This document shows, in pieces, positions 2,334-48,882 of a stretch of DNA of 48,882 nt (positions are counted from its first letter, which is position 1; every line of letters starts with the position of its first letter). The translations under genes were made by a program, and so were the position numbers. The stretch comes from Klebsormidium nitens (taxonomy: Eukaryota > Plantae > Klebsormidiophyceae), in the NCBI GenBank assembly GCA_000708835.1, contig DF237585.1, forward strand, positions 1 through 48,882. Reading direction: 5' to 3'. Below the pieces are notes generated by a model. It worked only from the letters and a program-made list of their open reading frames with translations. It made no database searches and was not told the DNA's origin.

Positions 2334-5300
2334 ATGGAAAGCTCACGGGGCAATGCCGCTCGGCTCTTGATGGCCACAACCGCCATTGTCGCTCTCCTCG
2401 TTATCGGAGCAGCGATGTTTTCCTCGGGGAGCGAACTTTCTGAGCTTTCAGTCGCCCCACCCCGCCGCATGCTCGCTGCTGACGTTAGCGCCGCATCAGT
2501 AAATGCTGAAATCATCAGCTCACTGAACACGACCAACGTGCGGACCTACTACATCAGCATTGATGAGGTGGAGTGGGATTACGCCCCTGGTGACGGCGAC
2601 CTGTGTTTTAACCGGCCCTACACAGATATGGAGCTTCCGTACGCGCGTCCAAGTAACACCAGCATTGGCAGCAAGTACACTAAAGCGCAGTTCAGGTAGG
2701 TGGATTCGTGCATGGGTTCACTTTTGATTGATGCATTCTGATTGCAAGACAGACTTCGCTTTGCCCCAGCTATTCGAACTCACAGCTCCGTGTCAAAGCA
2801 TCACTACTTTACTTTGGGATCATTCTGGAGTTGGCTCGTTTCCACAGGACCTCTTGCAATGACCCGTGATCAACCAGCACTCAAATCTGGTCCCGTGACA
2901 AACAAGCTGCCTTTCCCTCCCAGTTTTATCCTCGAAGAGCAGGGCCTCCGTTTCGCGGCTCCAACTAGCACATCAGAGCCCTGCTTCGACCACAGATCCC
3001 CCTGTTTCTTTCCGCTCCCGCTGACAGCATTCCTCAAGTGCCCCTCTTTGCCCGCTCACAGATTCCCCCCAGATGCCCCAAAAGAATCTGCTCAATACAC
3101 CCTTTTTGTCCCCAAAGGATGCTTTCATTGGGCCCCTGATGCTTTTTCTGTCTTCAGAATCTTCCTCTGCCAGCTCACCCCCCATCTCAGCCACCTCAAG
3201 GATTTCCTGAAGTCACCTTTTCTTTTTCCTTCCCAGGGCATACACTGATGCCACCTTCAGCCAGCTCTCCCCGGTGCTCCCCCAGTGGCAACACTTGGGC
3301 CTGCTCGGCCCTGTCCTCCATGCGCAAGAAGGCGACACAATCGTGGCCGTCGTCCGTAATGCCGCCCAGTTCGACTTCACCTTCCACATTGACGGCGCTG
3401 TCCTGTCCAACAACTCGACTCGTGTCGTTGGAGATATCCCTGGTTCTGTTGTGGCGAGCAAGTTGGTGCAGCCGGGGGCGCCGAATGCAACGACGCTGAG
3501 GGGGAATGTGGGGGGGGGTGCGGAGGCCATTGCACCAAACACGACGGCAGTGTCGGTGTGGCAAATCACGAGCAAGTCCGCTCCAGGTGAGGGCTCCTTC
3601 TTCCTTCCTTCTTTGTTCTTCTGCAAACAGGTTTCCAGAAGGGATCAAGTGCCTTGGAATGGGTCTAAATTCGTAAAGGAGTCATTTTCAAGCGAGGGTT
3701 CTTGGAAAGACAAACTCATTCTCAGAATGGCAAGCTGTCAAAAATTCTGATAATGATGAGGGGGTCTGAGACGAATCCACCACTTCGGTTGGTGTTAGGG
3801 TGCATATAGGGCAACAGCGGTCTCCTGCCAATCTTGAATTTCTTCCCAGCTTTATCACTTATCTTCAAATTGTCCATGTGTTAAAAGGTCAATCACTCGC
3901 TTCGAATAGTCCATGTACTCTTCCCGTGCCTCAACCCCTTGGAGATGAAAGCAAAGCAATTTCAACAGTTCAGGGGTTGCCCTAAGACAGTTTTACAACC
4001 CACTTTCATGTGAAGGCCCCAGAAGTCAGATGCTCCACACCCAACATATCAGAATACGAGCTCTTGAGGACCAGAAGGGGTGACTCTTGCCAAGTAGACC
4101 CCAAAGTCCACAAGTCCAACCATGTTTTGAATGACAGAAAATGTCATAAATGTAAAGCCACACTTCTTGTCTTGATCTACAAGCCCCACTGAATTCGCAT
4201 TCCCATAACCTCATCTCAGGTCCTGGCGATGAGAGCTCCATTCTTTGGCTGTACCGCTCAACGCTCAACGGCCAACAGGACAATAACGCGGGTCTCTCAG
4301 GGCCGCTCATCGTAACCCGCAAGGGTCAAGCTAACCCAGACGGCACGCCGGCTGACGTGGACAGGGAGATTGTGGCGCTCTTCGAGGTCTTCGACGAGAA
4401 TGTCAGCCCCTTCTTCGACGAGGCGCTTATCCCAGCGGTGAGAAATTGTGCACCAGCCTAAATGTAGGTTTTTGATGCTGCCTGGTTCTGGCTCTGTTTG
4501 CCTGCTTGATTTTGTAATTGGTCTTTTCAAGAAGTCTTTTTTGAGTTATCAAGAAGTTTAAGGCACCTGCTTAAATACCATAGTCAATGCACAATTCTGT
4601 CGACTGGAGGATCTCAGACACCAATGTCACTTTCAAATCCATCTCGTCCTCCACATTTCTGAGGGTCTACTTTCAGGCGCTCTGTCTCTGCCTTCCAAAG
4701 CGGCACCCAATCGAACAATCGACTTAGCTTCTGCTCGACAACTTGCCTCTGCACTATCCAAATTGCCTATTTGCTGCACATGTTTTTGAAAGTAATCTTC
4801 AAATCAAGCAACACCCCAAGGGTTTTGAACCTGGACTCAACAATAGTACTGCAACTTCACTGCCACTGTTTGCTGGTTTGCTTTTACGCGGAAGCTCAAT
4901 TTTGACTTCCTGGGCAGATAGTTTTGCTGCAGCTTGAGTAGCATCTCGTTTAAGCCTGCGCTTTGCTAGTCGAGCTTCCAAAAGCACTCGTCAACTCGCA
5001 AATCACCGTAATCCGCTCACAAACAACAGCAAGAAGACGTGTCTGATATCGATTTGTGAATTCCTTCCAGGGCGTGAACCAAACCGACGAGGAGGCTATG
5101 GAGGCTTTCGCAGAGTCCAACCGCAAGTACGCCATCAATGGTTACACCTTCTGCAACAACGCTCCAACCATGGTCATGAACAGGGTTAGGCCCTAACCCA
5201 AACTTCTTCTCTTTAGTGCGATGACGCTCGTCAAAGCGTGGCTGAGTCAAGCCAGGCCCCGCGAGCAGTACGATTATCAGGGTTTTCTATGGCCTGCCTG

Positions 5301-8300
5301 ACGTTCTCGGAATTCCCCACTTAGCATGAACTTGATGCACTAAAAGGCAATTGGGGAAAAGGAGCCGTCTGCTGCTGACGCCTGGTGTCAGCCAAGTCTT
5401 CTCATGCACTGATCCAATGAGTGCGAGATGCCGTCCGACTTGGTTAAATTTTTCGTGTCTTGAGAATCAGCCAACAGCATTTGGAGGGGGCTATCACCGA
5501 ACGAGTCTAGTCACCGACCTACTGCAGATTCGGCTTCCCAAATGCCTTTTCACACTTGGCCCATCCTTGAATGTGAGCTCCAAACTTGTCACCTTGGCTG
5601 ACTTTACTCGCGCTTTTTTCCGGCGACCAGGGCGAGCGCGTGCGGTGGTATCTGGTCGCCCTGGGCAACGAGGTGGACGTGCACGCGCCCCACTGGCACG
5701 GCAACACGGGGGCGGTGTCCAACAACACGCAAGTCATGGACCAGCTCAACCTGCTGCCCATCAACATCCAGACGTTCAACATGGTGAGGGTTCGAAGTGT
5801 AAATTGACTTGGTATCTTTGCCGTTCAAGGTTTTAAACGGGAGATGGGGGTTTTGAGTCGGTGGCAGATAAGAGGCAAGAAGTGGGCCCAATCAAACCTG
5901 CCCAGCTTCCCATTATTGAAGTTTCGGAATAACTGGCCGTTTCTTTGCCTCTGGAGTTTGGGGTTCCAGACGTTGCCCTTGCCGTTTCGAGTTTCTGGGT
6001 CCTGGGTTCTGCCTTTAGTAAAGTCCATTGGCTGATGGGATGTTTGTCATGGAGTTTAGAATCAACTCCAATGTCGATACGAATTGGGACCATCTGTATT
6101 CTAAGCAGCTCGAACACATCAAGGGTATGCGGAAGTGCTTCAGAATGGATTCGCTACCTGGACATATAGTTCCACGATTACCTCCAGCAGAATGTCTATC
6201 CCTCAACATTAGCTGGTACATGTTGCTTTTGCTGACTGCCCGACACGTGTCCGCCATCCAGGTGCCTGACGCCACGGGCACGTGGATGTTCCACTGCCAC
6301 GTCAACGAGCATTTGATGGCGGGGATGAGGACCCTCTACCGAGTCGACGGGTTGGATACCATTGAGGCCCCGGGAACTGTTCGCCGTTACTTTGTGCAGG
6401 TAAGACACTTTGCTTCTCAGAAGGACGACTTTCGCTCCTTGATCTGTTCATATTAAATTCTTTTCTTCTTTGTCGAGAGTTGGGTTCTGTTGCGTTTGCC
6501 TTGATTCTGATCGTATACAGTTTTGTTCCTTCTCTGTCGAAGGTTGGATTCTGCAGCCTTCATTCAGCCTCAGAAGCGGGCCTTGATGACAAACGTCCAA
6601 TAATGAAAGTGGTTTGTTTGTCGCATTCGAAGGGCTCTGGTCATTGGAACCTTTCCCAACCGCTTTGGCGAGCCAGTGAGCTCTTCAGCAATTTTGGCGC
6701 CTCCTTTGAGAGGTCTCCAGCGCACACTACAGGAAGCCCCTGATTACGAGCCCTCAGAATCTTGCTCCCTTTCAGAACCTGTCTTGCAGAACGATTAGCT
6801 ACTCCGAGCCTCGCCCGATGGCAGACCCAGCGCCGCCGTAACGCCAAACGTGCAACCTCACTTTGCGTTACGCTTGCACTTTCGCAGATCGAAGAGGTGC
6901 TGTGGGACTTCGCCCCGTCCGGCCAGAACCTCTGCTTCGACGACACGCCCGGCGCCAACGTAACGCTCGACCGCGGAACTGACCTTACGGACGACGAAGC
7001 GCTTTTCGTTATCCCGAATCCGGACATCCCGTCCATCGGAAGCGTGTATAGAAAGGCGCGTTACATTGAGTACACGGACGCCACGTTCCGGACGGTGGTA
7101 ACGCGCCCCGAGACGGAGTCGCTCGGGATCCTGGGGCCGATCTTCAGAGCGGAGGTGAAAGCGTTTTTGAAATTTCTCTACGGATGAGTGGATGGTTCGA
7201 TGGCCAATGAACAAATCTTTGCTTTTTCAGATCAGCTATAATTGTCGAACTGTAAGTAAAGGAAAGCTGAGGAGGGAGCGGTGTAGAAATGTGTCTTTTC
7301 AGTTAGAGTTGGCCATAACTTCGGTACTGCGCTTTGCAGGCTTGCTGAGTTTTTTGAGTCAGCAAGTGGCCTGCGACCGGGTCGAAATAAAATAGTTCTA
7401 ACTTTTGTAGGCTGCAAATCGGATCCAGCCTAGCAAGACGAATGGGCGCAAGGCAGCCTCCCAGAGAGTCTTCTCAGATTTGCAACCGTTCGGCTACATG
7501 TAAGCGTGCACCAACAGAAGAAGACAGATTGAAATTGGACACTGGCTCTTCTTAGGAAACCTCTGATGATTAGTACACCTCGCAACTTCTGTTCCTTGTC
7601 AACCTCGTAACCTTATGCAACCATTCAAAATTTGGCGCGCAGGTGGGCAACACCATCGAAATCGTGGTGCGCAACCAGGCCCAGTTCGCTTTCAGCATGC
7701 ACCCGCACGGCGTTTTCTACAACAAGTCCTCCGAAGGCGCAAGCTACGCCGACAACTCGACACTTAACGACGGCGGCCACGGCTTCATCGCCCCGGGGGA
7801 GCAGTACACCTACCGGGTAAGTGGGGCCACGTGGCAAGCCTTCCGCGCTTTCTATCGAGGTGCCCGTATTTTGAGATCTGCGGGCGAACCTTGCCGGACA
7901 TCTTAGGGGCAAGGTCGCCGTCTCCCTGTCTCAGACGAAAGTTGATCTGGAGACGAAAGGCGAAGCTTCTCTTTACACTTAAAGGCGCAAACCTTCTGAT
8001 ATGCGGTAGTATAAGGTAACGCGTCAACAAACCGATACTAACCTGCAACCGCCGCTTTTAGTTTGCAGCTTTAGAGGCTGCTTCTTTGCAGGCAACAGCT
8101 CAAAAGTTGAATCTTCTTCTGCTCTGAATGCCATCAGAAAGGTACTTCGTCGGCTCTCACTGTCTGATCAATCATAAGTCGATTGACAGTCTTTCTGTTT
8201 TTCCTTCCACAGTGGGCCGTCCCCGCGCGCGCGGGCCCCGCGCTCGGCGACCCGAGCTCCAAGGTGTGGCTGTACCACAGCCACGTGGACGAGGTGGGCG

Positions 8301-11300
8301 ACACCAACGCGGGCCTCATCGGCGCGATCATCGTCACGCGCGCGGGCGCGGCCATAAGCCCCGCAAACCCCGCGCCCGCGGGCGTCGACCGCGAGTTCGT
8401 CGCGTTCTTCGGGATCCTGAACGAGCTGAGCAGCGTCTACGCGCTGAACAACACGATCGACCGGGCGCTGGGAGGAAACGCGTCGTCGGAGGCGGTGGAC
8501 CAGCTCTTGAGTGTAAGCGGTTTTTGCTTCGTCCGTTCAACTTGTTTTGGATATCGGCGTGTCTTTTGGGACTGCTTGCCTCTAACTGCAAGAGCGACGG
8601 CGCTCGATCCGTCATTCTTGCAAAAAGCCGATTCTTTTTGTTTGGCGATCTTCTGGGCTTTGTTTGTTGCCCTGCCGATCATGATAGCGTCTTACACCAG
8701 GCGCTATTCTACCCATCCAGTTCTGTCTGTTCAACGGAGTCAGTTGATCCCCACGGAACATTCTTCCCAACCTTTTTTCCAACGGTGGATTAAACATAGC
8801 ATCTTTTCGTGTGACGCAACATTCATGCCGTCGTCAGCTCACAGATATTCTACTGATTCAAATACAACGTCTCGTACCCCGCACTCGTGACACCGCATCT
8901 TCTCCCCCGCTAAACAGAACGACGACTACATCGAGAGCAACTTGAAGCACAGCATCAACGGTCGCCTCTACTGCAACCTGCGCGGGCTCACGATGCGCGT
9001 CGGCGAGCGCGTCCGGTGGCATCTCGTATCGCTCGGGTCCGTGCTGGACGTGCACGTGCCCTCCTGGGGGTCGCATACGCTATTGGCCCACAGCCAGAGG
9101 GTCGACTACACGCTCATGATGTCATCATCCATGACGACGCTCGACATGATCCCGGCCGAGGTGAGGGCGGCTGACGTAATCGTGACGAGAATGGAACACG
9201 TGTGCTGAAACCCGACAAGAAGCTGAAGTCTTGGTTGTTTCTGCTGCCTAGCGCCGAGCAGAAAGCTGGAACACGTAAGCCCCAAACAATATTATCAATC
9301 TTTGAAAAGGGTACGAATCACGATGAGGGAACGTCAGGTTGACAATGAGATACGTCAAAGTACTTCGTACATTTTCCTTTTTCGGAGTCAACTTTTGCAG
9401 ATTGGACAATGTTTGGTGCTTAGACCTAGGACCTAGGCTTTCCGTTACTGCATGGTCGAATAGGATTCGTTAAAGCCTTCCCAACCCGTTGTAAGAGCAT
9501 TTGATTGGCTCGCATAACAGCCACGTCAGATCGTGACAGCTGTCATCCGCGCGCGCAGATTCCTGGGGCGTTCAACTTCCAGTGCCACGTGGACGACCAC
9601 TACCTCGCGGGCATGAAGGCCATGTTCCAGGTTAACGCGACTTCCGCTGGTCCGCTGACCGCCCAAGCGGACCCCACCGGAACGGTCCGCACGCACTATA
9701 TTGCGGCACAACAGGTAGGCCGACTTGCGAGTTGCGACTTGCATTGGTGCCTCTTGTCTGAAACATTGGCGGTTTCTGCACATTTTATGCAATTAACAAT
9801 CATCCGGACGTCCTAGCCGCATCTGCTCTTGGCACGATGAAGTTTCTAATCATTATCGAAAGTTGGGAAGCTTCGAGTGTTGAGGGTGCTAAGACTGCTG
9901 AGCTGGAATTGTTCCGGCTTGGGCATGCCGATCCAACGCTTCAGAGGCCGGTCTTATGCATCTCAGAAATGGGCTTCTTCTCGGTTTTGACTGAGTAATT
10001 TTAACGCAGGTAACTTGGGACTACGCCCCCCTTGGTGCGGACGGCAACTGCGGCGGCCTGCAATTTGGACAGGTTGCGGATGCGGACACGTGGCTCAACA
10101 ACACTGGCCCAAACCAGATAGGACCAATCTACACGAAGGCTGCGTGAGTGCCACATTCAATTTGGGCAACACAAGAAGAAAGTTTTGGACGTGGTTTGCC
10201 TTTCTTCGAGTCACCCAGAGTCTTTTGAGAGACGGCAATCTTGCCATTCACGGCCAGACACTGCCGGATCTTATCAGGGGTACGTCTTTGTATGCTGTCG
10301 GTTGTACTTGGATGATCATCATTTCAGACTTCATCGTTTCAATACCCGCCACTTGACTTCAAAGCCTCTCTCGTATGAGCCTTCCTTTTAAGATCCGACG
10401 CTTGTTTGAAGCGTCCCTTCGCTCAAGACAACCACTACACTTGGGCAGCACAAACGTCTTTGCTTTGCATCTTTCGGCATGAGCGCTGCCCAGGACAGAG
10501 CGGAACGACGGAACGACTGATCGCATCTCCTTCTCCTACCAGTTACCTCGAGTACACAGACGCCACGTTCACAACGTTGCTCGCGGCCGCGCCCGACGAG
10601 GGCGGCCGCGCCCCCGGCCAGCGCGGCGAGCACCTGGGGCTGCTGGGGCCGCTCCTGCGCGCGCAAGTGGGCGACACCATCAAGGTGCGCGCGCTCAAAA
10701 TCTGTCACTTGGCTTTCGGGAGCGTCGTTTCCGGCGGCCGGAGAGCGTTCCTCGCAGCCAGGAGTCGAATTTTTGCGAAACTTTTGACCCGTCTTGAGAT
10801 GCCCTTTTCAAAAACTAAAGAACTAATCTCCGTGGCTTAAGTACTCGCTCTTCAATTTATTATGGGCGGCATCATAGGAATTGCTGTTCCAGAAAATTGG
10901 CGCAGCAACTGATTTGGGGCGAAATGCTAGAGCACGACAGATCGTGAGAATTTTAGAAAACAGACGCGCTTTGCGCACCCTCTCAAGAACGGGGCCTTGT
11001 TTCGCAGGTCGTCCTCAAGAACAAGCTCACGTTCCCGTTTTGCGCACCTACTCAATTAAGCGGGGCCTTGTTTCGCAGGTCGTGTTCAAGAACATGCTCA
11101 CCAACATGACTGCCAACATGGTGCCCAGCGGCCTCAGCGCGGGCCTCCCGGGCTCGTCCGTCAACGGCTCAACTGAATTCTTGTCCGACAGCTCTCAGGC
11201 TGAGGTGAGTTTCATTAGCAGACCCGGAACTTGAAGCTTTCCCGAGCATAAAACTACGAGCCAAGTGAGACATATCCATTCAGATGTCCGACGATTCTGG

Positions 11301-12749
11301 CCTTGAACGATTGTCAATCCTGAGGGTTGCTCGACTCTCCAGAGTGCTAGGATTGCATCCAAATTCGTGGCGACAGCGAAACCCGATGGTTCGATCCAGC
11401 GTCGCCGAAAGTTGGGGGCTGACCTTGTTTCAAATGCTTGCGAAGAAGAGTTTCCTTTATGCATCGCGTCGAGTCGCTGGTGCTAATCAGGTTCTGTGCT
11501 TGGGTTGAAGTCTTCCTTTGTGCTTGGGTTGGAGTCTTCCTCTGCATGTTCATGCCCGTTTGCTCTTCTCCCTTAATCCCTGCCACAAACCCATCTACGC
11601 ACCCAAAACCCTATCCTAACTCCTGACCTATCTTTGATAGGTGGCACCCAACGAGACGGTCACGTACGAATGGCCGGTTACCGCGAACATGGGCCCCGGC
11701 CCACTCGATGGGAGCTCCATCCTGTGGCACTACCAGTCCACGATCGACACCCCTACCGGAATTTACGCCGGCTTGATCGGCCCCATCATCATCACCGCTC
11801 GGGGGATGGCCCGGGGGGGCAACGTGACCGCGGATTTGGCCCCCCCCTTGATGCCCAAGGACGTGGACCGGGAGTTTGTGACGGTGTTTGGCGTTTTCAA
11901 CGAGAACAAGAGCCCGTTCCTGGCGGAGAATCTGGTCCAGTTCGCGAACGTGAGCCGGGAAGAGGCCGACAGCGTGGCGCAAGACATGCAGGATAACGAC
12001 GAGGAGAGCAACCTGAAGCACGGGATCAACTTCAGGTGAGGGCCGGCTTCTTCAGGAGCTTACCCTCAAACCCTAAAACCGTGAATATCTAGTTTCCTAC
12101 CACGCCCTCTTTGCGTGATTGGCTGACGCGATTGCAACGCCATAAAAGGGTGATTCGCAGTGAATCTGACTTTTCTGAGTTGGCAAGTTCCCGCAAGAGG
12201 GCAGTTTGGCAGATCCCCTCATTCTCTTGGTGACCTCTTCTTGCCCCTGGGTTGTCTTCCGTGTACATTTCGTTTCCGCTTTGAAACGACGGCCTTCTGG
12301 CAATCTGCGCCGTCCCCGTCAAGGGCGAGCAGTTTCAAGTCTTACAAAGGCGCCTCCTACGCGTTCAGGGAACGATAGTGTACGCCTCCGCACAATTCCG
12401 TCTTAAGTACCAAGTGAACTCAAAGTAGTGTCATCGGTTCCCCCAGCTCAAACCTTTCCTCCTCCGCAGGTTCTTCTGCAACTTGCCCGGTCTGACCGCA
12501 ACCCTAAACGACCGCGTCCGTTTCCACACTCTCGCAATTGGATCCGAGGCCGATCTGCACACGCCCAACTGGGGGGGTGGCATCTCCGTTCTGCGGCAGG
12601 GGGGGAAACGGACCATGAGCTTCGGACTGCTGTCCGGGATTGCGCAGTCTGCGGACACTGCTGCGGACGTCCGGGGGAGCTGGGTATATCACTGTGCGGT
12701 GCACGATCACCAGAACGCGGGGATGCAAGCGCTGTACGAAGTGGTTTAA
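2334..12749 (+). CDS. FOX1: Six-domain multicopper oxidase / ferroxidase (Chlamydomonas Fox1-like, ceruloplasmin/hephaestin family), ~1183 aa
   Basis: 16 exons, all GT-AG with consistent phase, total 3552 nt: 2334-2695, 3237-3586, 4220-4437, 5071-5184, 5631-5783, 6262-6399, 6888-7154, 7643-7816, 8213-8512, 8918-9160, 9559-9714, 10010-10143, 10543-10684, 11079-11204, 11641-12035, 12470-12749. The repeated ceruloplasmin-type blocks (WD[Y/F]AP, YTDATF, LG[L/I]LGP, ESN.K[Y/H].IN) occur three times. Cu motifs: HAPHWHG, WMFHCHVNEHLMAGM, MHPHG, WLYHSH, QCHVDDHYLAGM, YHCAVHDHQNAGM. N-terminal hydrophobic segment and many N-glycosylation sequons. Confidence 0.93.
10970..11101 (+). repeat. Tandem duplication of the intron-13 splice acceptor and exon-14 start
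   Basis: tttgcgcacc...ggggccttgtttcgcag|gtcgt(cc/gt)tcaagaaca(a/t)gctcac at 10970-11030 and 11039-11101. The two AG acceptors are 71 nt apart (exon starts 11008 and 11079). Confidence 0.9.
11496..11543. repeat. 2 x 24-bp tandem repeat in ferroxidase intron 14
   Basis: tgtgcttgggttg(a/g)agtcttcct(t/c), repeated directly. Confidence 0.8.
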
Positions 12750-16317: not shown

Positions 16318-21378
<5,061 letters not shown>

Positions 21379-31000: not shown

Positions 31001-32341
31001 TCCCCATGGATGAAGCTGCCATACCGAGGCCCTTCTACGTCTCGCCCCTGGCCGTAGGATGGCAATGGGGGCAATACAGGCCAGTGAGAAGGGTCCTGCA
31101 CAGGGCGGCTGTTTAGTCAGTCAGTTTCTCAAGTACTAGATCGATGATGAAGACGACTGCTTTGCTTCTAGACTGAGATCCTTCATCTGCAATCGTAAGT
31201 ACCCATTACGCGTTGGAAAGTGATTCGTAAGAAGTGGATTGTGCCTCACATGCTGACATACCCCCTAATCCAATGTATGATGTATCAAAGCCGTTAAACC
31301 TTTTGCAGTCCACCACCTTGGTTTGGGCCGAACAGTCATCTGTGTACTGTTCTGCCATCCTCAAGCCCACCGTAGCCTAACGCTTTCATCATCAAACCTG
31401 CCAAAACATTCAAAAGTAGCTTGTTGAGTGTTTGTACTGTGTCTAATGTCGATCCTCATTGATTCTCTGGAGTGGTGCAAACAACGTTGCAGACATCCCA
31501 CCTGGCTTGCCAGTAAAACTGCCCCGCTGTCCAGAAATAACGTCAAATGGCTCGTCAGGTTGAAACAACCCGTGAGCCAGACCCCATCTGGAACACGTAA
31601 TGAAGCGCCCCCCACGGCACCTGAAGCTGCTGCGACCGCGGCCTCAAAAGCTGCGGTGTTAGAAGTTGTTCCATCTCCAACAGCGCCAAAATCCACGATG
31701 TTGAGAGCTAGCGTTCTTGCTGGCAGCACGGGGGGTGTGGCGGGAGCGTAGGGATCAAACCCTGTCTGAGGGTGGAAACGACCATCTGGATAAAACCCTG
31801 TGCCAAATATCACTGGGTCTGGGTTGGGGGCTGGTGCCGCCTGAACTTCTTCTACAACGCCTCCCTCTGCATCTTCATCAACCGTTTCCCTTGTGATCAC
31901 CTCAGGTGGCTCGCTGCTTGCATCTTCAGCAGCATCAACAGCTGTTTTCCCAACTGTTTCATTTTTGAAACCCTCAACTGTCTCTTTGCTAGCCTCCTCA
32001 ACAACGCCGATCAAGTGTTCCCCCAATGACACCTGATCCTCTTCCAATATCCCTTGCTGTGCATCCTCTTCCACTAACTCACTTCCATCTCTCTCAAATG
32101 GGTTCTCTATCACTTGCTCAACTTGTTCAATACTTGGGCCCCCGTACACATCTTCCAGGCTCTCCACTTGCTCAAACTTTGCTGATGTCAAGTGACTGTG
32201 AAGGCGAGATATGCGAGTAATCTCAAGGTTGTGTAGCGCAAAGCAGTCAGCTCCATCACAGGTGAGGGAGCTCAAGAAAGCCACAGCGAGGAGGAGGGAG
32301 ACGACCGCCACCGCCAGCGAGCAGACATAGTTGCTAGCCAT
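28037..32341 (-). CDS. Glycoside hydrolase family 28 (polygalacturonase-like), ~630 aa
   Basis: 7 exons, total 1893 nt: 32341-31502, 31095-30975, 30269-30024, 29691-29486, 29276-29143, 28756-28645, 28270-28037. Motifs: DFGAVGDG, WLTGCFNLTSHLTLFL, PLPSYGQGRD, GTIDGRG, SPFWNVH, KNTDGVDPDS, TGDDAIAVKSG, LSIGSEMSGG, LRIKS. N-terminal hydrophobic signal or anchor. Confidence 0.93.
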
Positions 32342-37255: not shown

Positions 37256-40200
37256 ATGGGTTTCCATCTTCCAAAAGCGCTTGTGAGCGAGATCACCAAA
37301 GCGGCCAGGAAAGTAGGAGTCAGGTGAGCGATCTCGTGCGCTTCTGCTTGCCAGCTCCCTTCATCTTTCCAGGCGAGTGTTCGGGGTTAAACACACAAGA
37401 CCAGGCGCGATTTGAGGGGATGTGGCCCCAAGGTGGCCGCGAGCAATCATCCACAATTGTAGAGGCTTTGTATGGTTTTCAATGCCTGCAATTTGTGCAT
37501 AGCAGTGTGCAAGCACCAGCAATGTGGTACCCAAGTCTGGCCGTTCCAGAATAACAAAGGGGTTAGTATGTCAGCCTAGGGCCAGGGGTAAAATTTCTCA
37601 TGTCTCTGATTGGTACCCAATTGTGCGCCAAACAATCAGCGGTACGGGGTTCCTGGTCCTCTTTAAGCACGATCAAATCCCCTCGGGCAAGGTCTTGGGG
37701 CGCCTGCTCAGCATTACACCTCTGGACAACCATCGAAGGGGAGAATGGCCTGTGCTTGTACAGTGCCCTTCTCATGTACATCAACTCAGCGCGTCTGGAC
37801 TCGAATTGTTGGGCCTTGCGTCAGAATCTGTGTTTAATGTGTCCCATTCATCCCCGAGCTGAACCTCTCAGTATCTTCGTCCTTTGAAGGAGGGTTTGCA
37901 CAAAGGTCGCACAGTAACAGAAGGGCGATCCTTTCTCCTACTCACTCAAGCCCCCACCTTTCTTCCTTCACTAAAACCCCTCCACTCAGCAGTCATTTCT
38001 AAACATAAGTCCACCTCAGAAAGTCCTTTCCACCAGAACCAGCTCACTCTACTTATATGCTTCCACCACATTGTGCCCTGCAGTGAAAAGCTAGTCCACC
38101 AGGGGCTCCAGGCGCTCGATCTTGAAGCCAAGACCGGTGCCCCCCCCAACAGCGGCGCTGGCTACAGGCCGCCACCTGGCGGCACCCCATACGACCATGT
38201 GGCGGGCCCGAGCGCCGCCGCTGTGCCGCAGCCTCAGCACGCAGTCGTCGCGCCTCGGCCGGACTTGGTCGGGGGCAGCGTCACACCGACGCAGGAGGAG
38301 CTCAATAACTTCCAGGCGGCGGTAAATAAGCTATGGGACCTGGATGTGAACAGGCTCCAACCGGGCGTGGATTATGAGATCGAGGTGAGGGACAAGTGCG
38401 GGGGGCACTGTGAGGGTGGAAATGCACCAACTTGTCATCTTGCTTGTTTTTGAAACGATATTTGAATCCTTCTGTTCACGTTCACTTAAGCTGGTCTTCA
38501 ATTGATGTATCTCAAGTCGTGTGCTTGCAGCAGCGGTTCCTAGAAGGAACCGGACCTGCTGCATTCCATGTCACTATGTTTCGCGACATTGCCCCATTAT
38601 GGCTGACGTTGTGACTCTGTGTCAGGCTGGCGAGGGCAAGAAGATCTACGAGAAGGCAGACCTGGCTGCGGGGTCGTTGTTCCGGTTTGTTAAGATCGAG
38701 GCACTGCAGAAGCCCACATTCGCGGCCTTTGTTGCGCTGCTAGATAACTACACCGCGCAGCAGAATGTCACAGAAGTGGTAAGTCGTGAGCAATCAGACT
38801 CTGTCTCAGATGCTCCGTCTGCAGACTCTCAGCGTCGGCCAGAGTAGAGTTTCTTGGCTTTTGACAGCACTCAGATGGCCCCAGGTCGCTTGGAGATGGT
38901 TCTGGAAACGACTTTAGTTTAGAGGCGGCCACGACCCTTGAACGATGTAGGAATGATAAGACGCTTGCATGCTCGCCGTTTCTTGATTCGACAGTTGGGT
39001 CTCTAGATTCTGAAACTTTTCTTCATGAAGAGTTCAAATCCTCAAAGGCGGTTGCTGATGTATTGTTGGTGATATCAGCAATGGTTGTTGACCCTACTCC
39101 CTGCCCCTGTCATTCTGGTCATCTCGTGTCCAACCTCGACATCGCTCGCTTGGCGAATGGTTGACCCATGGACGATCTCTAGGAACCTGTACTACACAAC
39201 TTCTCATCCAAGGCGTCCAGACCAGATTTACATTGGGGGTTATCTCAGCTCTTTACAAACTGTTTGAGGTCAAGGAGCTCTCCAAATGGTTAACGTCCAC
39301 GTTTCTGCCAGAATCATCCAAAGCACGCATGGTGTGCACGACGATTTTAGGCTCCGGGTTTTCTCAACGTCGTTTGCTTATGCAGGTAGGCCAGGTGGAG
39401 CTCCAGGAGATGACGACCTTCCTGGACGAGATCTGCGCCACCCCCGTCATGCAGTACGTCCACAAGCTGCTCGTTGCCAAGAACCTTGCGCCCGCTGACC
39501 TCATCGCCTTCAAGAAAGTCCTCTGGAAGTGAGCGCTGCTCGTCGCTCCCCTTCTGGTTTTTCGATGGGGTCTCTCTTCCGCTGGTTTTAGCCCGAAACA
39601 AGCGAGTTGACGCTTGACTGGCTTGTGCACCCAGGTTTAGGAAGAGGCAGCGAGAGAGGATCTGGAAGGCTCTGTACGCTAAAAGAGCGGAAGTTCCCAA
39701 GAAGCCGAGCAGAAGAGACAAAGCGATGCTAGGAGCATACTGAACGGTCCGCACAAGGATTTTTGTGGAGAAGAGTGCTCTGCGAAGAGTCTCAAACTGT
39801 TGAATCGTGAGTTGTGCCACAGCGGTCTCCCTGCTCGAGCTGGCTCGCAACTGTATTGAACCGTCAAGATTGGCGGGTTGGTTGTAGCGAAAGGGTTCAA
39901 TATGGAGTGCGCAGGAAAGTCAGTCGCAAACGTCTCATCTCTTTCCATCAATCACCGCACCTCAACATCTGAGATACGAAACCGCTCGCCACCTCCTAGA
40001 ACGCCAGGTCTGCTCAGACGTTCAAATTCACAGTATTTCGGTTCATAAAAGGTGTCGCGTCGTTCCGAAATGTGCGTGCTTCCAGGATGTGGTTCGAGCT
40101 GTACGGGCGCGATGGCGGGCGGCAGTCGTCCTCCGGGTTCGAGCACGTGTTTGTGGGCGAGTACAAGGAGGGCGAGGTGGGGGGCCTTCACAACTGGATC

Positions 40201-46419: not shown

Positions 46420-48882
46420 CTAACTACAAAATAGCAATGAGACAGCAATTCTATCCCTCACCGACCCGCTTCCGCAGGTGCAAACAAAAGCCTTGATGGG
46501 GTGCGAATCGTCTCCGAACTGGATGCCTGGCAAATGAGCAAATACCACATGCTGATTCTGATGAAGTCGTAACAGCGGATTCAGCAGAAATTGCTGCAAC
46601 CTTTGACTGAAAACGGCCCCAGTCTTACAGTCTCAACACTGTGGACAGAAGTCAGCCATACAAAACGCCGCTGAATCGTTCAGGATGTAAGAGACCCCCA
46701 TCAAGGATAGTTCAGTGATGGTAAAGGGCGTGACACGTAGAGGGAAACGTCGTGGCACGTGCACAGCTCACCATAGTCCCACGTCAATTCCTCTCTTGGT
46801 GCCACGTGGCGCGCTGTAAAGAACGCGATCCGATAGTGATTGTGATCCGGGCCCTCGACTAAGTTCAACTGGAACATACAGCATGTTTGCATCCTCGCAA
46901 CGGTGGTTGATGAACCTGGAAGAGGACGTGGACGCACCTGTGACTTGATGACTTCAAAGCTTGACGTCGGCCAAAGAAGGTTGCCACAACACAACGGTCA
47001 GCCTCAGAATGACGCGTGCTACTGATCTGGGAGCGCATTTGAGCGAGACGATGCAATAGCTGGACAGAAACACGATCGAGACCAGCGAGACCTCCTCTCA
47101 AATAACCCTGTCCACCGCAGGCCATTTCCCTCTCATTTTCGTGTTCAAGTGATGGTGACAGAGCTTTTCACGAGTGCCAACGAAATTGCACCGCTTGCTT
47201 GGTTTGAGGGCATCCTATCCGATTTCGAAACGGACTTCGAGACTTCGACAACCAACGAAAAGCAAGGAAGCACTCAGAAAAAGCGCAAGCCAAGCTCGCC
47301 CAAGGGCGGATGTCCTTTCGAGACTCACCGCGCAACGTTCCCCATCCTAGTTTCGTCCAGGCACAGCCCGGTATAGTCGGTCATCTGTTCTTCCACCAGA
47401 TAGTCCGCGTTCAAATCCACCGGGTACGTGTGCGGGGCGTCTTTCCTCTCCCGGTTCCTCTCGTCCATCTCCTCCCCGGTCAGAATCTCGCCGACGTACT
47501 CACAGACGAAGGCGCCCGGGGGAAGGGCGTCCAAGCAGCGCACGCCCCAGCCCTTGCCTGTGGACGTCCAAAATACCTGTGGCAGGAACGAGAGGAGTTG
47601 CTTTTGTTGGATGGTCGTTCGCACTGGTGAGGTTTGCGACGTTCCGATGGCGATCTCCACACTGGACGGAGCAGTGAACAAGCCTCAGTCGCGGTGTGAT
47701 TGACAAGAAACAGTAGAGGCGAAAATCGAAGGCAATTGTCCAGAGAAACCAAAAAACAGTCGGGCCCGCGCAATAGCTTGCGCGTTCCAATGAGCATCTG
47801 AGCAACCTAGTATTTATAAATGTTGGGGACCGTACGTTTTGTGTGAAATTACTTTGAGAATGTTCGCTTTCAGTGTTCATTGCCGCGAGCGAGCACCTGT
47901 GAAGGAACAGCCCACCAAAAGTTCATCAATCTCTGACAACCATTGAACTCAGCCCCTACTAGAGGTCTCGCAGCCAAGCACAAAATCTGTGTGCTTAACC
48001 CGATGCCCGGTCCTCGGAATTTACGCCAGTCCGAATCGAAACGTCTTGAATGTGGGTCTTGCCTGCAGGCGTGCCGTGACACCCCGCTGCACCACCCGGT
48101 TGCCGCAGCTCACGGGGCACGTGCATTTGACGCTGCACTCCTTGATGAACGTCTTGGCCTCGTGGCCCTTGCAAGCAGGGATGCGCCTCGGATTCTTCTG
48201 CTCCGCCGCGCTGATATGCCACGGATTATAAGCCGGCTAGGTTCGAGAGGAACGCTCTCGCAAGAAAAGCTCGGACGTGTCGGGAGAGTAGAAGATCGTA
48301 GAGACTGCCCGAGCGTTTACATCGCAGTAAGACGAGTATGTGATCACGAAGTCGAAACTGTTCCCCCAAAAAGCTGGAGGAGTCTGCCGACTGCCGAGTT
48401 TGACTTGGAATTGCAAGTGGGTCCTCCTTCAAAGCTGCTACAAGGAGGCCATTAGTGCAGAGTAAACAGCTAAGTAATCGTTCTTTAAAAGCAGACCCAA
48501 CTGATAGAGTCATTTCAGAGCTTTCCAAACTACCACATCACAATCTCTGGAGCTTACCATGCGTCGCTGAGTGGGACATTTTCCGGTGCAGAACACGAAC
48601 TGGGGGTCCATCGGAAATTTGTCACATCGCCGGATGTATGCCGGAAGGTGCCGTCGGCATAGGCGGCACCCCTGCGGGACCTGTAAGTCGTCCGGCATCC
48701 GTGCTCCTGCCGGTGCTGCCGGCACACGGCCGGAGACAGGCCGGACGGCAGACCATGCGCCGCAGCTGCGGCCGGGCGGGAGCATTCTAGAGCCGCCGAG
48801 CGTCGGGCGGCAGAGACGCCGAGTTGCACGCGGCAGCATGTGTGCGCCGGATTGCACGCCGGGCGGCAAGGGTTGCGGCGCC
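46420..48882 (-). CDS. SUVR1/2/4-type SET-domain histone H3K9 methyltransferase, 3' part only; apparent frameshift in SET domain (possible pseudogene or assembly error)
   Basis: Exons: >48882-48558; 48197 (or 48210)-48063 (CKGHEAKTFIKECSVKCTCPVSCGNRVVQRGVTARLQ); 47576-47329 (VFWTSTGKGWGVR...CEYVGEILT...HTYPVDLNAD...LCLDETRMGNVAR); 46915-46772 (FINHRCEDANM, then a frameshift, then GPDHNHYRIAFFT...EELTWDY); 46526-46420 (GIQFGDDSHPIKAFVCTCGS). Motif order matches plant SUVR4-class proteins. Confidence 0.85.

Follow-up and report, generated by a model that had tools for sequence, protein, structure and literature searches.

The 48,882-nt contig DF237585.1 of the streptophyte alga Klebsormidium nitens (the window, meaning the whole stretch of DNA analysed) carries a multicopper oxidase gene at positions 2334-12749 of the forward strand, which probably encodes a cell-surface multicopper ferroxidase of the FOX1 type. 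These coordinates run from the start codon (2334) through the stop codon (12747-12749), an in-frame stop precedes the ATG, and the gene comprises 16 exons separated by 15 GT-AG introns of 295-633 nt each. The joined coding sequence of 3552 nt translates into 1183 amino acids with no internal stop and ends in ALYEVV, as a first-pass annotation of the raw sequence had read it. A series of stop-free forward-strand segments along the gene translates throughout into pieces of a multicopper oxidase, and the Pfam families Cu-oxidase_3 and Cu-oxidase_2 are each matched by single exons. The exons are listed below with their copper motifs (L1 and L2 in odd-numbered domains, L3 and L4 in even-numbered ones), type 1 (T1) copper ligands and evidence; joints are GT..AG exon-exon joints read in RNA contigs, and L001 is an orthologous locus, both described further on.

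2334-2695, forward: exon 1, residues 1-121, with the start codon, an N-terminal hydrophobic segment and the start of domain 1; its end at 2695 matches the loose end of the RNA contigs and has the donor GTAGGT, and the L001 orthologue has the same start site
2364-2420, forward: hydrophobic segment LLMATTAIVALLVIGAAMF, residues 11-29, a signal anchor or signal peptide
3237-3586, forward: exon 2, domain 1, FHIDG at 3382-3396 (degenerate L1); RNA contig pieces and joint, Pfam Cu-oxidase_3
4220-4437, forward: exon 3, domains 1 and 2, YRST at 4252-4263 (degenerate L2); joints on both sides in four runs
5071-5184, forward: exon 4, domain 2, ESNRKY at 5113-5130 with Tyr at the position of the Fe-site His of ceruloplasmin domains 4 and 6; joints and residue table
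5631-5783, forward: exon 5, domain 2, E362 and HAPHWHG within 5670-5702 (HAPHWHG 5682-5702), giving T1 His366 and cluster His369 and His371; joints, internal alignment and residue table
6262-6399, forward: exon 6, domain 2, HCHVNEHLMAGM at 6292-6327, giving cluster His410 and His412 and T1 Cys411, His416 and Met421; joints, Pfam Cu-oxidase_2 at 2.7e-07
6888-7154, forward: exon 7, start of domain 3; joints
7643-7816, forward: exon 8, domain 3, MHPHG at 7697-7711, giving cluster His554 and His556; joints, Pfam Cu-oxidase_3
8213-8512, forward: exon 9, domains 3 and 4, YHSH at 8273-8284, giving cluster His614 and His616; joints
8918-9160, forward: exon 10, domain 4, ESNLKH at 8933-8950 (E698 and H703) and HVPSWG at 9053-9070 (T1 His738, cluster His lost); joint and loose end, ceruloplasmin alignment
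9559-9714, forward: exon 11, domain 4, QCHVDDHYLAGM at 9580-9615, giving T1 Cys782, His787 and Met792, with Asp786; the start matches the contigs' loose end, the end was placed from GT and frame and is kept in L001
10010-10143, forward: exon 12, start of domain 5; placed from AG/GT and frame, with the same splice sites in L001
10543-10684, forward: exon 13, domain 5; placed likewise, conserved in L001
11079-11204, forward: exon 14, domain 5, MVPSG at 11118-11132 (degenerate L1); placed likewise, conserved in L001
11641-12035, forward: exon 15, domains 5 and 6, YQST at 11731-11742 (degenerate L2) and ESNLKH at 12004-12021 (E1081 and H1086); phmmer match to ceruloplasmin at 4e-40, 86% identical to the L001 orthologue
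12470-12749, forward: exon 16, domain 6, E1117 and HTPNWG within 12546-12575 (HTPNWG 12555-12575) and HCAVHDHQNAGM at 12690-12725, giving T1 His1121, Cys1166, His1171 and Met1176, with Asp1170; stop at 12747-12749; based on the acceptor at 12470 and alignment to ceruloplasmin domain 6, conserved in L001

RNA contigs from four runs of four studies were aligned to window positions 3200-9199, and each run yielded one contig of 3.8-4.6 kb that spans exons 2-10 with zero mismatches and skips introns 2-9, all with GT..AG joints. The loose ends of these contigs read exactly into the end of exon 1 and the start of exon 11, matching introns 1 and 10. Because intron-free contigs can come only from RNA, the gene is transcribed and spliced as modelled. 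Twenty public runs of eight studies contain 25-38% of the words sampled from the 10-kb stretch, which is approximately the exon share. Introns 11-15 were deduced, supported by identical GT-AG positions in the L001 orthologue; splicing that would remove the copper motifs is therefore excluded for introns 1-10 by the contigs, and unlikely for the remainder given L001. Short contigs inside intron 8 (window 7845-8156) were found in two runs at a depth of ~3, versus 150-217 for the spliced contig; they probably derive from unspliced precursor RNA or from DNA carry-over. Two pairs of introns share a length, 2 and 3 at 633 nt and 6 and 7 at 488 nt; neither pair shows meaningful sequence similarity, and we regard the equal lengths as coincidence.

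A Logan DNA assembly of a related alga supplied the orthologous locus L001. Its alignment with the window is confined to the 16 exon blocks (80-94% nucleotide identity), the introns being unalignable, and all 15 introns are GT-AG and lie at identical positions. Exon lengths are equal apart from a 12-nt difference in exon 1, and the 1179-residue product is 88% identical to the window protein. The ratio of nonsynonymous to synonymous substitution rates (dN/dS) is 0.149 at a dS of 0.47 and falls below 0.25 in every domain. Every copper-ligand column is kept in L001, the sole change being Ser to Ala at a degenerate domain 5 position (VS to VA), and conservation of the ligand pattern under a dN/dS of 0.15 argues that it is not due to chance. 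The gene is thus real, expressed and under purifying selection.

The protein consists of six cupredoxin domains (D1-D6) arranged as three homologous two-domain units, the internal repeats being 39-41% identical. On alignment of the three units, each motif falls in the same column, so that the copper sites can be compared domain by domain:

D1 (odd): FHIDG and YRST, cluster histidines incomplete
D2 (even): HAPHWHG and HCH, cluster histidines complete
D3 (odd): MHPHG and YHSH, both histidine pairs present
D4 (even): HVPSWG and QCH, cluster histidines incomplete
D5 (odd): MVPSG and YQST, cluster histidines incomplete
D6 (even): HTPNWG and HCA, cluster histidines incomplete

The ligands of the trinuclear cluster are therefore His369, 371, 410 and 412 of D2 together with His554, 556, 614 and 616 of D3, with no complete set elsewhere. 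T1 sites are complete in D2, D4 and D6, each formed by C-x4-H-x4-M (at 411, 782 and 1166) and an upstream histidine (His366, His738 and His1121). The first-pass annotation had proposed that complete type 2/type 3 (T2/T3) histidine pairs occur in D2 and D3 only, with degenerate counterparts in D1, D4, D5 and D6 and three intact T1 sites with axial methionines. All twelve motifs were found at equivalent repeat positions, the degenerate ones at matching columns as listed, and the T1 sites are borne out by the ligand table and the internal alignment. The histidines of the cluster in Chlamydomonas and Dunaliella Fox1 have been placed in domains 2 and 3, as have those of bacterial six-domain oxidases, and the chordate proteins have the cluster in domains 1 and 6 (PMC3600357, 2013). 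The D2/D3 position of the cluster is already published architecture and not a discovery of this study.

In ceruloplasmin, Fe(II) sites are formed by E935, H940, D1025 and E272 in domain 6 and by E597, H602, D684 and E971 in domain 4, and the domain 2 site, where Tyr takes the place of His, is presumed not to bind iron (PMC3738974). We located the equivalent residues using ceruloplasmin alignments of exons 10, 15 and 16 together with the family alignment:

D4 site: E698, H703, D786, E1117; EHDE, complete
D6 site: E1081, H1086, D1170, E362; EHDE, complete
D2 site: E325, Y330, E415, V734; E, Y, E, V, incomplete

Control rows of reptile ceruloplasmins read EHDE as expected, and the D4 quartet is EHDE in ~20 of the 27 FOX1-type rows of the ligand table; in the volvocine FOX1 proteins no part of the D2 quartet remains. 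The two complete quartets are good sequence evidence for a ferroxidase and point to Fe(II) binding in D4 and D6.

Residues 11-29 are the only 19-residue stretch with a Kyte-Doolittle mean of at least 1.6 (peak 2.44), and the same scan, in which the C-terminal anchor of hephaestins is visible, identified no comparable hydrophobic stretch at the C-terminus. Chlorokybus and chlorophyte FOX1 proteins likewise have one N-terminal segment, lying behind a tail of 20-100 residues. From these features we infer ferroxidase activity, topology, electron path and partner as follows. The protein would face the cell exterior, held by or released from its N-terminal hydrophobic segment, and Fe(II) would bind at the Glu/His/Asp/Glu quartets next to the D4 and D6 T1 coppers. 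As the quartets are complete only in these two domains, iron would be oxidised there, whereas it is the D2 T1 copper that is wired to the cluster. The electron would then pass to the D2 T1 copper, connected through the His-Cys-His triad to the cluster, and O2 would be reduced to water at the D2/D3 trinuclear cluster. Fe(III) would be handed to an uptake partner which, by analogy with Chlamydomonas, may be an FTR1-type permease.

Relatives were collected with an exhaustive profile-free search using exon 15, which returned 713 proteins, and with a word search using an alignment (A1) of FOX1-type hits and the window exons as separate rows, which added named proteins. The full-length window protein itself was absent from the returns of the exon 15 search, the A1 search and an exact look-up of the exon 15 open reading frame (ORF) in public collections, and what came closest was a 116-residue ORF from an exon of a relative (P0001, 87%). 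Among full-length proteins, Chrsp127S01958 of Chlorokybus atmophyticus (P0175) matches best, with an identity of 44% over 866 residues in BLAST and of 46% in the tree alignment. Identity to the window protein is 34-38% for chlorophyte FOX1-type proteins, about 32-34% for animal ceruloplasmins or hephaestins and about 30-34% for the human ones. Exons match PDB ceruloplasmin at 4e-40, 1e-26 and 1e-37, each aligning to two or three repeats and exon 15 (4e-40) to all three. The public model of P0175 looks faulty, its first 450 residues aligning poorly and the HPHG-to-WLYHSH spacing in domain 3 being 22 residues versus ~57, as if an exon were missing.

A ligand table of ~75 long homologues splits cleanly into a D2/D3 type, comprising Volvox FOX1, Ostreobium, Raphidocelis, Tetradesmus, Haematococcus, Parachlorella, Chlorokybus, the choanoflagellate Codosiga and further sequences, and a D1/D6 type comprising animals and the glaucophyte Gloeochaete. 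On the FOX1-type side every protein, those of Volvox, Ostreobium and Chlorokybus included, reads HHH/HCHHM in D2 and HH/HH in D3 as does the window protein, with L3 and L4 in D2 and L1 and L2 in D3, which supports the earlier assignment to the Fox1 type. Phylogenetic reconstruction agrees with this split, as all D2/D3-type proteins fall on one side of a branch supported at 100/99 in the careful tree and at 99 in the quick tree. In the careful tree the window protein and L001 are sister to Chlorokybus (100/100), and the quick tree joins the window protein to Chlorokybus at 99. This sister relation speaks for a streptophyte host, and the public runs carry two organism labels, which would fit the renaming of K. 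flaccidum to K. nitens. Chlorophytes form a 100/100 clade in the careful tree and the streptophyte pair is neither inside nor sister to it; constraining a green-plant clade costs 23.3 log-likelihood units, with a p value of 0.068 in the approximately unbiased (AU) test, so that these results neither establish nor reject a shared descent with chlorophyte FOX1. When the Chlorokybus protein served as query, the best 120 matches of a word-prefiltered listing included neither another streptophyte protein nor one from a land plant, which is weak evidence of absence; this agrees with the report that higher plants have only three-domain proteins (PMC3600357). The Codosiga hollandica protein (P0015) is, like P0009, a six-domain oxidase of the D2/D3 type, and its occurrence in a choanoflagellate extends this type beyond green algae and bacteria.

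Comparison of the two-domain units by BLAST and tree indicated that, within the FOX1 type, each unit matches its counterpart at the same position. In the comparison with Gloeochaete, the unit carrying L1/L2 best matches the unit carrying L1/L2 (46%). For the animal, Paulinella, P0294 and P0182 proteins, the three units fall together by lineage, and the deep nodes of the unit tree do not separate rotation from differential loss. P0294, a JGI metagenome protein of 1091 residues, has three complete sets of all four copper motifs in a single chain, and P0006 (Paulinella micropora g76860.t1, 1275 residues) has three sets of four motifs, one His short; alignment and regular expressions show three T1 sites and three EHDE quartets in each as well. 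The form with three complete sets has been treated as a hypothetical ancestor (PMC3600357). In P0182 (JGI/ENA, 1048 residues) the sole complete cluster set lies in domains 4 and 5 (HAVHWH 626, HCH 668, HPHG 799 and WMYHSH 856), a position without description according to PMC3600357, and this protein completes the set of three rotational variants. Bacterial two-domain oxidases of ~380 residues, some labelled 'hephaestin' by JGI, were also recovered in their hundreds (range P0192-P0268). They are 41-46% identical to single FOX1-type units and very near the eukaryotic units in the unit tree, which would fit a repeated origin of six-domain proteins from bacterial-type two-domain genes.

We compared the window protein with Chlamydomonas reinhardtii FOX1 and Dunaliella salina D-Fox via Volvox africanus FOX1 (P0007), Ostreobium (P0004) and other chlorophytes. 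It resembles algal FOX1 in its six domains, D2/D3 cluster, T1 sites in D2, D4 and D6, single N-terminal hydrophobic segment, lack of a C-terminal anchor and D4 EHDE quartet. It differs from chlorophyte FOX1 in sequence (34-38% identity), in its position outside the chlorophyte clade and in its streptophyte host, as well as in having a predicted cytosolic N-terminal tail of ~10 residues rather than 20-100. It also keeps the D6 quartet and part of the D2 quartet, whereas volvocine FOX1 has lost both. The Chlorokybus protein, sister to the window protein in all three two-domain units (96-98), shares its D2/D3 cluster and its three T1 sites, but unlike it has EHDE at all three Fe sites. With human ceruloplasmin and hephaestin, proteins of iron export, the window protein shares the six-domain build, the three T1 positions and D4 and D6 Fe(II) quartets of the same kind; Tyr replacing His at the D2 site is likewise common to it and human ceruloplasmin. 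In those animal proteins, however, the cluster lies between D1 and D6, with HH/HH and HHH/HCH where the window protein has HD/RT in D1 and HNG/HCA in D6. The T1 copper wired to the cluster in ceruloplasmin (D6) is itself at an Fe site, whereas that of the window protein (D2) is not, and hephaestin has a C-terminal anchor that the window protein lacks. Bacterial MnxG-type oxidases, compared by description, also have a D2/D3 cluster, but their T1 site is in domain 2 only (PMC3600357) where the window protein keeps all three. Yeast Fet3p/Ftr1p follows the same proposed logic, surface oxidation of Fe(II) followed by transfer of Fe(III) to a permease, although Fet3p, unlike the window protein, has three domains and is anchored at its C-terminus.

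Several observations weigh against a membrane-held ferroxidase coupled to a permease. At the D2 T1 copper, the one wired to the cluster, the Fe site is incomplete (E, Y, E, V), and for this reason we can only infer the T1-to-T1 relay of electrons from D4 and D6. Some FOX1-clade paralogues, such as Chlamydomonas XP_001693036, are without Fe quartets. Residues 11-29 may be a cleaved signal peptide rather than an anchor, an ambiguity that arises because only ~10 residues precede them; of the N-terminal transmembrane anchor proposed in the first-pass annotation, the single N-terminal segment and the absence of a C-terminal one stand on hydropathy, and the anchor may instead be a signal peptide. 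Finally, a six-frame scan of the 48,882-nt window for REGLE-type motifs gave one chance match and there was no related Pfam among the neighbours, so that no FTR1-like gene was found in the window. This last observation would also suit a ferroxidase working as in Dunaliella, where D-Fox associates with transferrins, with Fe(III) loaded onto membrane transferrin-like proteins and not an FTR1 permease, an arrangement we judge improbable here. About equally improbable is a six-domain oxidase with another main substrate, such as Mn(II), Cu(I), ascorbate or phenolics, serving for instance cell-wall or metal-detoxification chemistry, in which the ferroxidase residues would be inherited and unused. 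Multicopper oxidases are promiscuous (PMC3738974), the bacterial six-domain relatives with a D2/D3 cluster include the Mn oxidase MnxG (PMC3600357), and the paralogues just mentioned would be examples of such quartet loss. In the window protein, however, both EHDE quartets are complete and kept in the L001 orthologue under purifying selection, and three T1 sites are intact as opposed to the single domain 2 site of the MnxG type (PMC3600357).

The idea that the gene is decaying or mis-assembled and does not express its motifs in the form read could find some support in the low-depth contigs inside intron 8, but these reach ~3 against 150-217 for the spliced contigs, which have no mismatches; together with an open frame of 1183 codons and a dN/dS of 0.15 relative to an orthologue of identical exon structure, this makes decay or mis-assembly exceedingly improbable. 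Horizontal transfer into streptophyte algae, which would leave the gene with no bearing on the green-plant ancestor, is a more serious though still unlikely alternative. It is favoured by the careful tree, in which the Klebsormidium/Chlorokybus pair groups at 83/68 with the environmental proteins P0008, P0183 and P0184 and not with chlorophytes. Against it, the gene has 15 spliceosomal introns and a host-like composition and is present in two streptophyte classes, and the green-plant clade is not rejected (AU p 0.068).

Elsewhere in the window, four genes were recognised, none of which is related to metal transport:

17129-18538, forward: KRR1-type KH-domain gene
31361-32341, reverse: GH28/pectate-lyase-like secreted protein gene
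39161-39532, forward: XendoU endoribonuclease gene
47325-47681, reverse: SET-domain gene

The FOX1-type gene P0008 occupies positions 10001-13558 of L002 (Logan SRR23287145), a compact, apparently intron-poor eukaryotic contig, and a VIT1-family iron transporter gene lies directly downstream (L002:13686-14393, reverse strand). This adjacency is a contextual link to iron.

PMC9168544 assigns Fox1-type six-domain ferroxidases to Chlorophyta and PMC3600357 to "green algae", research on how streptophytes take up iron addresses IRT1/ZIP (bioRxiv 10.1101/2022.07.21.501042), and we found no literature report of FOX1 or FTR1 in streptophyte algae. What is new here is the presence of the FOX1 type in a relative of land plants, a lineage without prior description of it, the architecture being known. 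An expressed and selected Klebsormidium gene with a Chlorokybus sister suggests that early streptophytes possessed a copper-dependent oxidative route that was later lost. The first-pass annotation had gone further, placing a ferroxidase-permease route on the lineage leading to land plants if the host were a streptophyte alga; the oxidase half of this proposal gains from a FOX1-type protein in two early streptophyte classes, and the permease half and common descent do not, given the lack of FTR1 in the window and an AU test (p 0.068) that leaves descent neither shown nor rejected. Tentatively, and with the odds somewhat against it, the FOX1-type ferroxidase may be an ancestral green-plant iron-uptake module that survives in Chlorokybus and Klebsormidium and was lost before land plants, in which Fe(II) would be oxidised only at the D4 and D6 T1 sites and every electron relayed T1-to-T1 to the D2/D3 cluster. 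The finding extends known biology rather than introducing a new mechanism, and it links iron and copper nutrition in the algae nearest to the land transition.

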